The notes: generated from the sequence alone by a model not told the origin. Positions 1,638 to 25,276 are shown, counted from the first letter of the stretch. The stretch: DNA of 64,000 nt from Blastocladiella emersonii ATCC 22665 (GCA_025594325.1 JANHCV010000007.1:682001-746000), one strand, 5' to 3'. Program-made: numbers and translations.

Positions 1638-4616
1638 ATGGGCCAGTCGCAGTCGACGTCCAGCCAGCACTCGGCGCACGGCCACCATGGCGCGCACGCC
1701 GGCGCCGGCGCGCACCACCACTACCGCGACCGGCCATCGGGCGACGACGGCCTCCTGTCGCCGTCCGCCTACGCCTTCCTCGATGCGCAATCTTCTGGGG
1801 GTGGTGTGCCGCGGCGCGGCTCCGAACCCTCGCTGCCCACTTCCTCCACAACCGCCGGCGCCGCCGCCTCCGCCACCTCGCCCGTCGACACGCGCGCGCC
1901 CGCCATCGCCGCGGCGTTCCGCGACCCGCGCCGCGAACCCTCGGTGCGCACCACGCGCCCGGGCGGGTTCGGGTCCAACCCGCGCCGCCCGCGCCCGCGC
2001 CGGCCGTCCGCCCCGCCACCGCCCGCCGCCGGCTCCCTGAATCGCGGCGCCGCCGCCGGCGCCGGCGCGGGGGGCCCCGTCGATATCTCGAACCCGACCA
2101 ACGTCGAGCAGGGGATCCACATCGAGTGGGACGAGGAGACGGGCACGTTCCGCGGCGTCCCCGCGCCGTGGCGCGCCGCGTTCGAGCGACAGCTCGGGCC
2201 CGCGGTCCTCGGAATGCTCGCGCCCGCCAACTCCAAGGCGGCGTCGGGGTCCGGGCCCGCGACGCCCGTCCGCGTCGAGTCGGCGTCCGCCGCGGAGCGG
2301 ACCGTCCCGATGCGGTCGGCGACCGCGCCCGTTGAGGTCGATGCGCCGCCGCGGATCCGGTCCACCTCGTCGTCGTCCAACCACGGCGCGCTCGCGTCGC
2401 TCGCCCACCGCCCGCTCCCGCCGCCCATTGCGCCCGCCGACCGCGACCGCGATCGCGAGCGGGAACGTGAGCGCGAGCACCGCCACCGCCGCAACAAGTC
2501 GTCCGAGACCAACAACCGCGCGACAACGCACTCGCCGTCGCCGCACCGGACCGCGGCCACCGCGCCACGGGAACGCGAGCCGCGCCGCATGGCCTCGTCG
2601 CAGTCGCTCAACATGACCACCCCGAACAAAGTCCCGCGCAGCCCCGGCGGCAACCCGCGCCCGACGAACCTGCCGCCGCTCACGCGGCCCGAGAAGTCGG
2701 CGCACCGCCGCACCCCGAGTTCCGGCAGCGCGCCCGCGTCGCCGTCGCAGCAGCTCTCGCCCGCATCGTCAAGACCGCAGCTCACGAGTTCGGCGTCGTC
2801 CGCGTCGCTCGCTGTCGTCGGCGGCGGCGGGATGCCGACCGACCGCCGGCCGAGTGACGGTGGCGCGAGCTCGCCCGCACGGCGACCGTCCAACACGCCG
2901 TCGATCCGGTCGCGCTCGCCGTCGCGCGGCCCGCCGCCTGTCGCGAACCCGCGCAAGGCGCCGCCCGCGACCCCGCCGCCGACCGCCCCGCTGCCGGACC
3001 GTCCGCTCGCGCGGCCCGTCCCCATCCCTTCATCCTCGTCCGACGACCAGCCGATCCGCGCCCGCCGCGTCTCGGCGCGCCGGTCGCGCGTGCTGTCGAT
3101 CTCGCCGCGCGGGTCGCTGCTCTCGACGGGCGCCGTGATGGCCGCGCTCGCGGCGGCCGCGATGCAGCGCGAGGAAGAGAACGCGCGCGCCTCCTCTACG
3201 CGTGCGTCCCGCGACAGCACCATGGCGACGCTCGACGACCCCGACGCCACGGTGCGCGCGCCCGTCCCGCCGCCCCGGTCGACGAGCAGTTCCGGGCGCG
3301 CGGCGACGATTATGGCGGCCGAAAAGGAGCGGCGGCGGTCGGCCGTGGTGCTGCAGGAGGAGCCGGAACCGGTTGAGCCTGAAGTGGAGATTCCCGCGGC
3401 CCTCGCCGAGGCGTTCCACCAGGTCACGATCCACCCGGCGCTGCAGCGGTTCATTGCCGAGGCGCAGCGCATGGAGCGCGAGCAGCAGGAGGCGCGCGCC
3501 GCGGGGAAACAGTCCGACGCGGCGCCGCAGCCGAACGGCGTGGCCACGGCGTCGTCGCTCGTGCAGCTGCTCCAGGACGGCGCCCTGGGCGAGGCCGGGC
3601 GCGAGCTCGCGGCGCTGACGTCGATGCGCGTGACGCCCGCCACCCTCGCCGTGGCCCTCGCGCCCATGGTCGAGTCGGGCGACCCGCACGCGGTCTTCGC
3701 GAACGTGGTGCCGTACGCCGAGGGCGCGTCGGGCGACGTGCACACGGCGAAAGATACCGTGGTGCACTGCGCCGTGGCCATCAAGATCGTGCCGCGCGAC
3801 CACCCGCGGTCCGCCGACAAGATCGCGCGGCTCCCGCTCGAGCTGCACCTGATGCGCGCGTCGCGCCACCCGAACGTCGTCTCGTTCATCGGCGCGTACC
3901 TCACCGACGACGCCGTCTGGATCGCCATGGAGTTCATGGATGCCGGGTGTCTCGCCGACTTTTTGTACGCTGACGAGGAGGACGAGGAGGGGGGTGAGCT
4001 CGTCCTCGCGGCACCCGGCATCGCGTACATCACGGCCATGGTCGCGCGCGCGCTCGAGTACCTGCACGCGGCGCACCGCCTGCACCGCGACGTGCGGTCC
4101 GACAACGTGCTGCTGACGGGCCGCGGCGACGTCAAGCTCGGCGACTTCGGGTACGCGACCGAGGCCCACGCCCCGCTCACCGAGCCCGTCGGCACGCCGT
4201 ACTGGATGGCGCCCGAGGTCGCGGCCGCGGGCGCGCGCGCCTTCGCCGAGCCCGGCAGCGTCGTCGATGATCTCGACGAGGACGCGGACAAGTCCCAGTA
4301 CGGGTCCGCCGTCGACGTCTGGGCGCTCGGCGTCACCGTGTTCGAGATGGCCGCCCGCATGTACCCGTACGCGGACCTCGACGAGGTCGCGGCCCTGCGC
4401 GCCATCGCCCGGAACGGGTGCCCGGACCTCGACCCGCACGCGCGCGACCGGCTCGGCGACAAGGGCGTCGCCTTCTGGCGCCGCGCCACGGCCAAGGACC
4501 CGAGCATGCGGCCGACCGCCGCCGAGATGCTCCGCGACGACGCGTTCCTCGTCGACGCCGACCTCGACGCCGGGCGGAGGCAGGTGGTGGCCATGGTTCA
4601 GGGGCAGGGGGAGTGA
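1638..4616 (+). CDS. PAK/STE20-family protein kinase with CRIB (p21-binding) domain, 992 aa, apparently intronless
   Basis: CRIB ISNPTNVEQGIHIEWDEETGTFRGVPAPW; kinase motifs EGASGDV, VAIK, HPNVVSF, WIAMEFMDAGCL, HRDVRSDNVLL, KLGDFG, VGTPYWMAPE, DVWALG; N-terminus MGQSQS. Confidence 0.93.
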   Translation: MGQSQSTSSQHSAHGHHGAHAGAGAHHHYRDRPSGDDGLLSPSAYAFLDAQSSGGGVPRRGSEPSLPTSSTTAGAAASATSPVDTRAPAIAAAFRDPRREPSVRTTRPGGFGSNPRRPRPRRPSAPPPPAAGSLNRGAAAGAGAGGPVDISNPTNVEQGIHIEWDEETGTFRGVPAPWRAAFERQLGPAVLGMLAPANSKAASGSGPATPVRVESASAAERTVPMRSATAPVEVDAPPRIRSTSSSSNHGALASLAHRPLPPPIAPADRDRDREREREREHRHRRNKSSETNNRATTHSPSPHRTAATAPREREPRRMASSQSLNMTTPNKVPRSPGGNPRPTNLPPLTRPEKSAHRRTPSSGSAPASPSQQLSPASSRPQLTSSASSASLAVVGGGGMPTDRRPSDGGASSPARRPSNTPSIRSRSPSRGPPPVANPRKAPPATPPPTAPLPDRPLARPVPIPSSSSDDQPIRARRVSARRSRVLSISPRGSLLSTGAVMAALAAAAMQREEENARASSTRASRDSTMATLDDPDATVRAPVPPPRSTSSSGRAATIMAAEKERRRSAVVLQEEPEPVEPEVEIPAALAEAFHQVTIHPALQRFIAEAQRMEREQQEARAAGKQSDAAPQPNGVATASSLVQLLQDGALGEAGRELAALTSMRVTPATLAVALAPMVESGDPHAVFANVVPYAEGASGDVHTAKDTVVHCAVAIKIVPRDHPRSADKIARLPLELHLMRASRHPNVVSFIGAYLTDDAVWIAMEFMDAGCLADFLYADEEDEEGGELVLAAPGIAYITAMVARALEYLHAAHRLHRDVRSDNVLLTGRGDVKLGDFGYATEAHAPLTEPVGTPYWMAPEVAAAGARAFAEPGSVVDDLDEDADKSQYGSAVDVWALGVTVFEMAARMYPYADLDEVAALRAIARNGCPDLDPHARDRLGDKGVAFWRRATAKDPSMRPTAAEMLRDDAFLVDADLDAGRRQVVAMVQGQGE

Positions 4617-4686
4617 GGGGTTGTTAGAGGTCGTGAATACACTGCAAGTTTGCGTCGCGCTCGTGCTCCCATGCATGCTCCGCGAC

Positions 4687-20922: not shown

Positions 20923-21384
20923 GGCGGCGGCTCGATGGGCAGAACGCCGCGCCGCGCTCTCCGCTCGCTCTTCTCTCCCAGCACCGCGACGACGCTGATG
21001 AGAGAGTCACACACGACACATGCAGCGAATGAAGCACACGCTGCAACCTGCTTGTTAGCATCGCTGGGTCGCGCCACCGGCGCCGCTGGCGGCGTCCAGC
21101 TGGGCCGACCTCGCGCTCACGCCCGAGGCGGTCGCCAGCAGACCTTGACCTTAACGTCGACCCGGCTCGTCGCGCAACCGCGAGGCGGAGAGCCAGAGCA
21201 ACTTGTCAGGAGATTTCGATCATGCGGGAGGGAGTCGCGCCCACATGGGCTTTGTTCTGCAGGGACGGGGAGAGAGGAACAAGGCATGTCCTCGTGTCGT
21301 CGCTGCAAACATAGACGAGCGCCGCCGCCACCGCTGCTCCACGCTCCCTCCTCCGCGCCCATGCATCGCTCTTGAGCATCAAAC

Positions 21385-23393
21385 ATGTCATCGTCCGATT
21401 GCTCTGTCCTGAACGAGTTTCAGTTCACCACCGGCAAGAAGCCCACGGCTAGCAACTGCTGCGAGTGGCCGAGTGTCGCTTGCGATGCCGGCGGGAAGAT
21501 CGTCAAGCTGTACGCGCTGCTCGACCGAGCGCTAGTTACCGCGCGTCTCGATCGCTGACACTCTCTTCCTCCTGCGGCTCGTTAGGAACCTGGTCGAGGG
21601 CATGCTCATTGGCGCGATCCCGCCGACGATCGGTAGCCTGACCGCGCTCGAGGAGCTGTACGTCTGTTTCCAGCTCGAAAAGCACGACATCGCACAGCCG
21701 TTGACTCGCGCTCCCTTGACCAATAGCCGACTCTTCGACAATGACCTCCGCAGCGCCATCCCGCGGAGCATTGGCAATCTGACCAACCTCAAGGTCCTGT
21801 ACGGCTGTTGATGCGATTCCGCCTTGGTCTTGTCGCTGACCCTCGCGCCGTCTAGCGACATGGGCGGCAACAAACTCGTCGAGTCGATCCCGAATGAGAT
21901 TGGCGGTCTGGTCAGGCTCGAGGAGCTGTACGGATCCCCTCAATTGCTCGCCCTGAGGCCGTAGCTGACCTTGATCGTCTTTCGAGTAGGCTGATCGCCA
22001 ACAACACGCTGACCGGCGAGATCCCGCGGACCATCGGCAACCTCAAGAGCCTCAAGAAGATGTACGTCTCGCGCTCGCGCAACTCGCGCAGTGCCGCGCA
22101 ACTGACTGATATTGCGTTCGGCTTCCAGTGATCTGTGGGTCAACGGGCTCAAGGACAAGATCCCCGACGAGATCTGCGACCTCGGCCGCCTGGAAGAGCT
22201 GTACGTTGCCTCACTTGGACTGTTTAGCTCGCGGCAGGGGTATCATGCACTGACGCTGTTTACAGGCGACTGTACAACAATACGCTGACCGGCGAGATCC
22301 CGCGCAACATCAACAAGCTGTTGAACCTGCGAGTCCTGTACGGCTAGCGTGCTCTGACGCGCTTCCGCTCTCGCTATGCTAGTCATATCTGCTCACCTTC
22401 GCTTGTCCGCGTGTAGCTCCCTCACGCGCAACTCGCTCACCGGCGAGATTCCTGTCGCCCTGTTTGAGCTCAAGGGCCTCATGCGCCTGTACGTCGTTCA
22501 AGTCTTGAACATGTCACACTCGCAGGCTTACGCATGAGCCGTCTTTAGCAATCTCGGTTTCAACGGCTTCAATGGCACGATCCCGCCCGCGGTGAGCTAC
22601 TTGGAGAAGCTCGAGTTCCTGTACGTTTGGACTCGCTTGACCCGAGGTCAACTTGCTCGCTTGGGCTCACGCATGTGCTGCGTTTACGTAGCGATTTCGA
22701 CACAAACAAGTTCACGGGAACCGTCCCTGCCTCAATCAGCAACCTCAAGAACCTCAAGCGCCTGTACGTGACCTTAATCCTGCTCAAACGTGGCATCGTT
22801 GACTGGTTCGCTGCCTCGCGTAGGAAACTCGAGGGTAACCAGTTCTCGGGCCCGCTTCCCGCGCTTCCTCGCGCAAGGTACACTGTTACTTGACCGCGTC
22901 CGCCGGCGCTCGCTCACCGCCCACCCCGTGCTGTAGCGACAACTGCACCATCCTCGGCAAGGAGCGCGAGGGCAACAAGTTCTTGTGCTTTCTCGGCACC
23001 ACTCGCGAGGGCAAGTGTTTCGAGGAGCAGAACGCCGCCCTCAAGGACCTGCCGACGGTTTGCCCCACATCAGCCGCGACGCTAAGCCCGACTTCGCTCC
23101 CCGAATCCGCGGGATCGGCTACCCCGCTCATCTTGGGCATCGCGATCCCCGCCGCGCTCGTGCTTGCTGTCGCTGCGTTTCTCCTGATCCGGCACCGTGG
23201 TCGCTCAGCGCCCACCACCGACGACAAACCAGCACCGCGTGCGGCCGCCATGGCTCCCGCTGCACCTGCCGTGTTCGATCCCGAAGCCCTGTACCTTCCG
23301 GCTACTACCGCACCGCCGCCGAGTCAGGGCCCGCGTGCGGCCGAGTCGGACGACGTGCTTTACCTCCCGACCCAGGCCGCGCTGTACAAGTAG
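21385..23393 (+). CDS. plant-type LRR receptor-like protein: Cys cap, ~10 LRRs, Cys region, single TM helix, short tail; 12 exons
   Basis: Exon 1 21385-21509 (NCCEWPSVAC cap); 72-nt exons 21586-21657, 21727-21798, 21856-21927, 21990-22061, 22129-22200, 22266-22337, 22417-22488, 22549-22620, 22692-22763 each encode LxxNxLxGxIPxxIxxLxxL; then 22824-22877 and 22937-23393 with TM LILGIAIPAALVLAVAAFLLI followed by RHRGR. Confidence 0.93.
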
Positions 23394-23882
23394 TTGATGT
23401 AATTGCTTTTATGAGGCGTGTAAAAGCGTAGATATAGACAGTTTCGTGTTGCTTGGATCACACTTGTACGCGTGAGCGGTTGGCTGACTGCTACGAAAGG
23501 AATTCGGCGATCACAGCTTGCCGTCGAATCCTGTTTGTAATGAGAGCTTTAAACTTTCAACTCAACTGTACTTGAGCATGAAACGGCCAACAACGAAAAG
23601 ACGATGAGGAACTTGGACGCGATGCGCCACACACGTGATGTGGCGCAACGCCTCTCACCGGCTGGCGACAGTCTCGGCCGGTTCGCGGAACATCCACCCC
23701 TACCTGTAGTCAAGTGAGCGCCCGTGACCGCAACCAACAGGGCGAACCGAGGCATGGGTACGCGACAGGTGCGAGACGCGCCGATTGACGCGTTTTGGCG
23801 AGCGAAGCTCGCGTGTTCAAGAGTTCAAATTGATGGGCAAGGTTTTTTTTTCATTGATCGAAGGGTATATTCATCATTCCGG

Positions 23883-25276
23883 CTAGAATCGTTTCCGATG
23901 TTGCAGAATTGCCTTCAACTGAGCTTCCCCACCCAGGGTCACCAAAGTATCCCTCACATCAACCGTCAGCCCCCAAGGAACCGTCTTGACCTTGAAGGCA
24001 CCGACAATCGAGTCGTCCACTCGGTTTCCAGCAATGAAGAGCCACATAGGTGATCCGCGGAGGGACGGAGCGAGCTGGGCAATTCCGTCGAAGTTTATGC
24101 CACAACTGGTCAAGTTGAGCTTGTGCAGCGATGCCGCAAGGTTCAACTTGCTGAGCCGCGAAAACTTGCGCTCGAATAGTTTGAGCGGAGAGCCAACAGT
24201 GTGGATCGGATTTTCATGCAGTTCTAGCTCTACGATAGAGTTTGAAAGTGACATAATGAAGAGACTGGCCGCCTCCGGCATGAGGTCGCACGCACTGAGG
24301 TCAAGGATTTCAAGGCCCATGAGACGTATGAGGCTACTCGACAGCGCGAGCGTGGTCTCAAGTGTGAACGTATTACCTCCGAGCTTGAGCTTAACGAGGC
24401 CTTCTGGAAGGCGCGACACGACGGCAAGTAGGGAAGCGGAGCAGTGCCAAAGCATTTACTGAGTTCCAGTGATTTGAGCGTTGCTGGAACGGCATTCATG
24501 AGCGCCGCAGAAACCTTGGCGTTCAACGGCGTTTCCGACAAGTCCAGAGAGTGAAGAGTTTCCGGAAACGGGGGCAAACGAACTGTTGAGGTGGACATGG
24601 GGAGCCCGCTTGAAGAGACGCACAAGTGCAAGAGAGCGTGGGGAAGCCGCTGCAGAAGCAGTTCAAGCTTATCTACGCGATTGTAAGGCAGGTTCAACTC
24701 GGTTACGGAATCAGGCAAGTTGAGTTCATAAGAGGCAAGCGCGCAATTGAGTAGTGCGATACCGCAGGAGCGATTCGTTGGTCCCGCACAAGGATCGTGT
24801 CCGAATGGTCCAAAGCAACGTAATCAAAGATTCCAGCAATTGCTGGGTCCCCAGGTGCGACCCCTTTCGCGGGAACTCGAGCACCTGACACAGAATCAAG
24901 CGCAACCAAGTTCCTGTGACGGGTTCGCGGGGAGGACGATGGCCGACTTGTTTGCGCGCCAAAAGGCAAGAACGCCATTGTGACTAAGACGAACGGCCTC
25001 GAGCACCTCCTCGTGGTCAATGCTGAAGCCCTGCCCACTGCACACGCGCAGGTGCTCAAGCAACGCCGCGTTGCCACTCCGAGTAGCACTTTTGGTGTTG
25101 AGAGTCGGGCAACGATGCAGGACGGCCACCGTAACGTTTGGGATATGAGCACGCGGCTTCACGCGGAGGTACGGTCGCGTGCTGTGTCAGTCGTCTGCGG
25201 GATGGAGACGAACAGCACGAACGAGAATGTCCTCGACGATATCACTAACAGCAAGGTAGGGTTGCATTGGTTGCAT
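23883..25276 (-). pseudogene. RNI-like LRR gene with F-box/ankyrin-like N-terminus, disrupted
   Basis: MQPMQPYLAVSDIVEDILVRAVRLHP, in-frame TGA 25187-25189, ATRSGNAALLEHL, then LRR segments (LPDSVTELNLPYN, FPETLHSLDLSET, LPEGLVKLKLGGN, LEILDLSAC, LHKLNLTSC) distributed over different frames. Confidence 0.65.

Follow-up and report, generated by a model that had tools for sequence, protein, structure and literature searches.

A Blastocladiella emersonii gene with one plant-class leucine-rich repeat per 72-nt exon

How does a zoosporic fungus come to carry a gene whose leucine-rich repeats (LRRs) belong to the class typical of plants and are divided among exons at one repeat each, and is such an array still being rearranged? 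Proteins combining LRRs with a transmembrane (TM) segment were found to be almost absent from 49 fungal genomes by Soanes and Talbot (PMC2939053), and LRR receptor-like kinases in chytrids have been noted in a 2026 paper (PMC13618815). We analyzed a gene of this kind in a 64-kb stretch of the genome of Blastocladiella emersonii ATCC 22665, referred to here as the window. The one-LRR-per-exon layout and its growth by exon duplication are already known from other organisms. What is new is the blastoclad fungal setting, the lack of a kinase and of a signal peptide, and a C-terminal cap, TM segment and tail that are specific to one family.

Gene structure and repeat array

The gene model was obtained by locating donors and acceptors on the sequence read from 21000-23900, with the 5' end and the splice sites predicted. 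It consists of a 12-exon reading frame on the plus strand (21385-23393; Table 1) with exons of 125, nine times 72, 54 and 457 nt; the spliced coding sequence of 1284 nt encodes 427 amino acids and has no internal stop. All 11 introns are of phase 2, have GT..AG ends and measure 57-79 nt. The donor reads GTACG in ten of them and GTACA in the other, and CTRAC motifs resembling branch sites are found upstream of the acceptors. GTACG is not generally enriched in the window: the count outside the gene is 71, compared with an expectation of about 80. In every intron that splits an LRR, the cut falls in the codon of repeat position 1, the first residue of LxLxxN (CT/N or AT/N, the slash marking the intron; Leu or Ile).

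Table 1. Predicted features of the gene in the window and exon plans of its relatives
Feature	Position	Strand	Description
Exon 1	21385-21509	+	125 nt; start codon, conserved N-terminus (MSSSDCSVLNEFQF..GKKP), N-cap CCEWPSVAC at 21457-21483
72-nt exons 1-5	21586-21657, 21727-21798, 21856-21927, 21990-22061, 22129-22200	+	
72-nt exons 6-9	22266-22337, 22417-22488, 22549-22620, 22692-22763	+	
Nine 72-nt LRR exons together	21586..22763	+	eight phase-2 introns between, 57-79 nt, GTACG donors
54-nt exon	22824-22877	+	last, truncated LRR (LKLEGNQFSGPLPALPRA)
Last exon	22937-23393	+	457 nt; C-cap, TM, tail, stop codon
Four-Cys C-terminal cap (NCT..C..C..CP)	22937-23066	+	family-specific; aligns with P0001-P0004
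TM helix L340-I360	23127-23189	+	Kyte-Doolittle 19-residue mean 2.76; RHRGR directly after; aligns with paralog TM
Predicted cytoplasmic tail, 67 aa	23190-23393	+	juxtamembrane DDKP; LYLP at 23289-23300 and 23358-23369; stop codon
P0001 exon plan			125/144/54/547 nt; all phase 2
P0002 exon plan			125/144/72/54/604 nt; all phase 2; donor and acceptor differ from annotation
P0003 exon plan			(59)/69/69/72/270/544 nt; all phase 2
P0004 exon plan			146/72/72/144/72/69/54/448 nt; all phase 2

The plant-specific (PS) class of LRRs has the 24-residue consensus LxxLxLxxNxL(S/T)GxIPxxLGxLxx. The nine full units of the gene, each of 24 amino acids, read LxLxxNxLxGxIPxxIxxLxxLxx and follow this consensus at N6 in eight of nine, at G10 in five of nine, and at I/V12-P13, L19 and L22 in all nine. 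A repeat HMM trained on paralog units alone, and thus not circular for this gene, matches all nine exons with 7.6-32.7 bits (seven at E<1e-3) and has no other match of this LRR class within the 64-kb window. The exon-per-repeat pattern is real and far beyond chance. A first-pass annotation of the window had described nine consecutive exons of exactly 72 nt with one 24-aa LRR each, as well as phase-2 introns throughout and GTACG donors almost throughout; the gene model and the independent HMM agree on the former, and the intron counts given above, with all LRR-splitting cuts at repeat position 1, bear out the latter. The five-residue strings that it cited for the predicted ligand face (NLVEG ... 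DFDTN) match the nine units exactly. Its further point, that face residues vary on a fixed scaffold, is correct but holds for any LRR protein and is not distinctive.

Units of the gene are 25-58% identical to one another in amino acids and 42-67% in nucleotides, and its introns align with each other no better than shuffled controls. A recent tandem duplication inside the gene is ruled out by this low unit identity and by the unrelated introns. Units 1-6 (21586-22337) alternate in two types, with the first, third and fifth ending in LEEL and the second, fourth and sixth in NL..L(K/R)(V/K). Of all ten partitions this division came out best; column shuffling, in a test chosen post hoc, gave a p of about 1e-4. 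The sequences indicate that units 1-6 are three old copies of a two-exon block, the trace of an ancient duplication.

A small Blastocladiella family

The last exon (151 aa) was compared with 1.84 billion cluster representatives using HMMER and gave only four matches, P0001-P0004, at E values of 1e-11 to 1e-4. These relatives are 36-47% identical to the gene over the last exon, and since the best of them reaches only 47%, the product of the gene itself is apparently absent from the searched collection. P0001, P0002 and P0004 are hypothetical proteins of B. emersonii ATCC 22665 from the JANHCV assembly, described by Leonard et al. 2022 (PMC9730499), in which the members of the family are H9P43_009138, H9P43_009137 (= P0002) and H9P43_006067; P0003 is the B. 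britannica hypothetical protein BC828DRAFT_402784. With the full spliced protein, phmmer scores against the four were 157-172 bits, and the alignments covered the N-terminus, the last repeats, the C-cap, the TM segment and the tail motifs. Common to the family are an N-terminus of the form M..DC..V..FQF.PG.KP..CC.WP.V.C, a C-cap NC..C..C..CP and a TM segment followed by basic residues; juxtamembrane D(D/E)KP and LYLP-like tail motifs are likewise common to the gene and family members. The family is small and has so far been seen in the genus Blastocladiella only.

P0001 and P0002 lie in tandem on one strand, 485 nt apart (L001 3001-5781), and the family is thus partly arranged in tandem. The annotation of P0002 (L001 4531-5781) appears to be mis-spliced; a GTACGC donor at 4656 and an acceptor before 4723 give the exon plan of the family, and the respliced model regains a CCKWPGVRC cap. 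The P0003 model (L003 ~3925-4060) begins with MTNCC; immediately before it, in a different frame, the sequence encodes the family N-terminus (MALTAVFLTDCDIVKQLTFSPS). This suggests that exon 1 either has its frame broken by 1 nt or contains a sequencing error.

The gene sits where GC content falls from about 0.66 to 0.55-0.58. On the minus strand at 23883-24718, two overlapping ORFs in different frames have weak matches to LRRs that are not of the PS class (LRR_1 at 21.8 bits, LRR_6 and LRR_4). They represent an LRR gene of a different class, either frame-broken or split by introns, that lies about 500 nt downstream of the receptor-like gene and is convergent with it. The annotation had placed the gene beside an island of decayed LRR genes. 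Of that island the one frame-broken ORF pair remains, and it is of a different class; no further PS-class repeat exists in the window, and an adjoining island of the same LRR class is ruled out. At ~23614-23664 there is a short multi-copy element, of which several contigs from the same sample share 22-36 nt and at which summed contig depth rises two- to three-fold.

Given the fall in GC content, the adjoining frame-broken ORFs and a C-terminal exon search that returned no protein above 47% identity, so that the gene is apparently absent from the protein sets searched, the locus might be regarded as a decaying or non-functional copy bordering an island of gene relics with lower GC. We consider this highly improbable, because the frame is open through 12 exons, all 22 predicted splice sites are canonical, GC3 of the coding sequence is 0.82 (against a GC content of 0.58 in the introns) and all family motifs are kept. 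The locus appears to be an intact gene that is apparently missing from the public protein sets searched.

Every mapped intron of the family is of phase 2 and falls at one common repeat position, which argues that the family's ancestor already had the one-repeat exon plan. The first exon of P0001 and P0002 has the same length of 125 nt and the same phase 2 as that of the gene in the window, and a 54-nt exon stands at the equivalent place in P0001, P0002 and P0004. The gene has nine full repeats and the other family members two to six. By these exon plans, repeat number (2-9) has changed through entire exon cassettes being gained or lost; in the paralogs, exons of 144 and 270 nt are units fused through intron loss. 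These events are old and not ongoing.

The annotation had gone further and proposed a modular receptor for non-self recognition, whose cassettes could be shuffled or skipped. In its strong form, the gene would be an actively diversifying receptor with symmetric phase-2 cassettes exchanged between loci or alternatively skipped, yielding many specificities. All LRR exons are indeed 72 nt long and of phase 2-2, so that a skip or a swap would preserve the frame, and repeat number does range from 2 to 9 among paralogs. There are also precedents (PMC3341825, PMC11378527, PMC6564038), and diversification in this manner has been proposed for the ROCO/LRR genes of brown algae. In brown algae, the LRRs of ROCO genes are encoded by shuffled 72-bp exons (PMC11378527, PMC3341825). 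Like the gene studied here, brown algal ROCO and type I LRR genes encode one LRR in each 72-bp exon and have symmetric phases and a variable number of repeats; unlike them, it carries no ROC-COR GTPase domain, ending in a TM segment and short tail, and it has no sign of recent shuffling. The published ROCO exon consensus also differs in that it does not start at LxL. Tetrahymena possesses arrays of 90-bp LRR exons with phase-2 introns, which have been explained by clonal exon duplication (PMC6564038). It resembles the gene in having arrayed LRR exons of equal length with phase-2 introns between them, whereas its 90-bp unit, its thousands of genes, its young, near-identical exons and its LRR type set it apart.

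Several lines of evidence stand against present-day diversification in Blastocladiella. Within the gene, units share no more than the low identities given above and introns resemble each other no better than shuffled sequences do. Among 25 units from five genes, the best pair between paralogs shares 7 of 15 variable positions, and conservation by position is highest for the last full unit. Young, near-identical LRR exons were found neither within the gene (maximum 67% nt) nor between loci in the five family members examined. The family is small, with just four relatives among the 1.84 billion representatives. DNA contigs of the source sample had no joints and no structural variants across the gene; the four DNA runs come from the assembly's own sample and confirm contiguity alone. 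An actively diversifying receptor is thus very unlikely, and present-day shuffling or skipping is not supported. The modular part of the claim has fared better: growth of the array by duplication of whole exon cassettes is supported, as far as comparison of sequences goes, by the range of two to nine repeats among paralogs and the two-unit periodicity of units 1-6.

Protein layout and proposed surface function

The solenoid of PS LRRs forms the N-terminal two-thirds of the predicted protein; cysteine caps enclose its nine full repeats and the partial one on both sides. The protein begins with MSSSDCSVLNEFQFTTGKKPTASNCCEWPSVAC, and the N-cap motif CCEWPSVAC is present in exon 1. Against LRRNT_2 (PF08263), exon 1 scored 12.4 bits with profile positions 28-41 alone aligned, compared to a cut-off of 20.7, and the paralogs gave no match to this profile at E<=0.01. 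A Pfam search of stop-free exon pieces of the gene returned LRRNT_2, LRR_4, LRR_14 and LRR_1, all below threshold; the paralogs are above the Pfam cut-offs for LRR_8, LRR_1 and LRR_14. No match to a kinase domain was obtained, the protein stops 67 aa past the TM segment, and there is no Pfam domain in the last exon. The tail is rich in Pro and Ala, and LYLP or near-LYLP motifs are also found in the tails of P0002, P0003 and P0004. A CCxWxxVxC cap, a TM helix and a short tail, the layout of plant receptor-like proteins (RLPs) that the first-pass annotation had seen here, are all present in the predicted protein.

The fold was assessed by proxy, through the AlphaFold model of the paralog P0004. 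Confidence in this model is high over the LRR domain (pLDDT >90 over residues 20-200) and low for the C-cap, TM segment and tail. Its best 50 matches in the PDB were without exception plant LRR ectodomains, among them MIK2, FLS2, GSO1, PSKR, ERL1-TMM, SERK1, PGIP and BRI1. By way of this paralog model, the protein encoded in the window is predicted to adopt the PS-LRR solenoid fold.

We consider it probable that the locus is an intact Blastocladiella-family gene for a single-pass membrane protein with a PS-LRR ectodomain and a kinase-less tail, and that it acts in ligand binding at the cell surface. The LRR domain would face outward, to judge from the positive-inside rule (RHRGR after the TM segment), the eight cap cysteines and the five sequons on the N-terminal side. 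The N-x-S/T sequons, five in number, are all N-terminal to the TM segment, as are eight of the nine cysteines (in caps or repeats), with four in each cap. The concave face of the LRR domain probably binds an extracellular ligand or surface, and signalling or sorting may occur through the tail (DDKP, LYLP) or a partner protein, by analogy with plant RLPs.

The missing signal peptide contradicts the outward orientation. There is no hydrophobic signal sequence at the N-terminus, where hydropathy over 19 residues reaches a maximum of 0.65. Three codons ahead of the ATG the frame is closed by a stop. None of the five family members has a signal peptide, and a search for an upstream signal-peptide exon at the five family loci gave no convincing candidate. 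All five family genes keep an ATG at a distance of 3-8 codons ahead of the DC motif, which, with a signal peptide lacking, suggests insertion by a signal anchor (type III) or a 5' exon that escaped detection.

It is possible to read the same observations as pointing to a cytosolic LRR domain, with the N-terminus inside or the TM segment a mere C-terminal membrane anchor, in which case the protein would not be a surface receptor. The absence of a signal peptide throughout the family, the conserved position of the ATG and the short stretches preceding the start codon (270-320 nt in L001 and L002) would fit such an arrangement. However, the RHRGR directly after the TM segment fits the positive-inside rule, the caps have four cysteines each and the sequons all precede the TM segment, PS-class LRRs are extracellular in all 50 of the best structural matches, and a tail of 67 aa is too long for a tail-anchored protein. 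We therefore regard a cytosolic LRR domain as quite unlikely and retain the reading as a surface protein.

Plant likeness and origin of the cassette

The architecture is ordinary for plants; it is the host that is unusual. The LRR-kinase genes of rice (group 5) have 72-nt one-repeat exons bounded by phase-2 introns that fall within the first Leu codon of LxL, as well as 144- and 69-nt variants, and exon duplication and intron loss have been proposed for these arrays (PMC3050792). Intron position, phase and the 72-nt exon size are the same in the gene described here, and the 144- and 69-nt variants recur in its Blastocladiella paralogs. For precedent the annotation had cited the brown algal ROCO genes, which do have 72-bp LRR exons, but the closer parallel in plant LRR-kinase genes (PMC3050792) was missed. 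Plant LRR-RLPs and receptor-like kinases (RLKs) further share with this protein the 24-residue PS LRRs, a CxWxxVxC-type N-cap motif and a single TM segment, and the RLPs a short tail as well. The gene differs from them in being fungal, in having neither signal peptide nor kinase, in its LRRNT_2 match below the Pfam cut-off, and in a four-Cys C-cap, TM segment and tail that have no relatives beyond Blastocladiella. Plant LRR families also comprise hundreds of genes, whereas the Blastocladiella family is very small.

The plant side of this intron comparison rests on the rice study (PMC3050792); among the plant and green algal loci that we fetched, those of Klebsormidium and Erythranthe are intronless and that of Selaginella has one phase-1 intron at another position. 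In the brown alga Ectocarpus fasciculatus, the one PS-like LRR gene mapped (L004, P0120) differs in having mostly phase-1 introns after the G of LxG. Its exons measure 72-144 nt and its cassette boundary is unlike that shared by plants and Blastocladiella.

The nearest language-model clusters are mostly from Streptophyta. In a word-indexed search, a method insensitive for this family, as P0001 (whole or N-cap only) did not recover the known paralogs, P0004 matched look-alikes in the LRRs only, mostly metagenomic or bacterial (45-50% identity), followed by plants (38-41%) and brown algae.

One explanation for the plant likeness is that the family was acquired as genomic DNA from a streptophyte, either a plant or a green alga. 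This would explain the plant LRR class and the plant-like N-cap motif, and it would fit the 72-nt exons whose phase-2 introns interrupt the first Leu of LxL as in rice LRR-kinases, the exclusively plant ectodomains among the top structural matches of P0004, the language-model clusters, and the near absence of LRR-TM receptors from fungi (PMC2939053). Yet codon bias and GTACG donors appear host-like, the C-cap, TM segment and tail are specific to the family and unmatched outside Blastocladiella, and the best matches to the P0004 LRRs are metagenomic or bacterial rather than plant, which together argue against a recent transfer from plants. A sub-threshold LRRNT_2 and the lack of signal peptide and kinase also fit poorly with a streptophyte source, and we judge such an acquisition unlikely.

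That the intron position is shared speaks for a common ancestry of the cassette. It is conceivable, if rather doubtful, that the phase-2 intron in the first Leu is homologous between the fungal family and plant LRR-kinases; the cassette would then predate land plants or have moved as genomic DNA to or from the green lineage.

The gene provides a concrete case, in an early-diverging fungus, of a plant-class LRR ectodomain combined with the intron position and phase of plant LRR-kinases. It also bears on annotation: automated procedures mis-splice arrays of micro-exons, as one paralog model appears to have been, and may miss them altogether, given that the gene in the window is apparently without a public protein. 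With this family it can be tested whether the cassette of one repeat per exon is of ancient origin, was transferred or arose by convergence. If the intron is homologous by ancient descent, the 72-nt PS-LRR cassette would be far older than land plants and would have survived in a zoosporic fungus. If instead it was transferred between a green-lineage organism and the Blastocladiella lineage, the transfer would have founded a fungal family of LRR surface receptors, which this kingdom is regarded as lacking.
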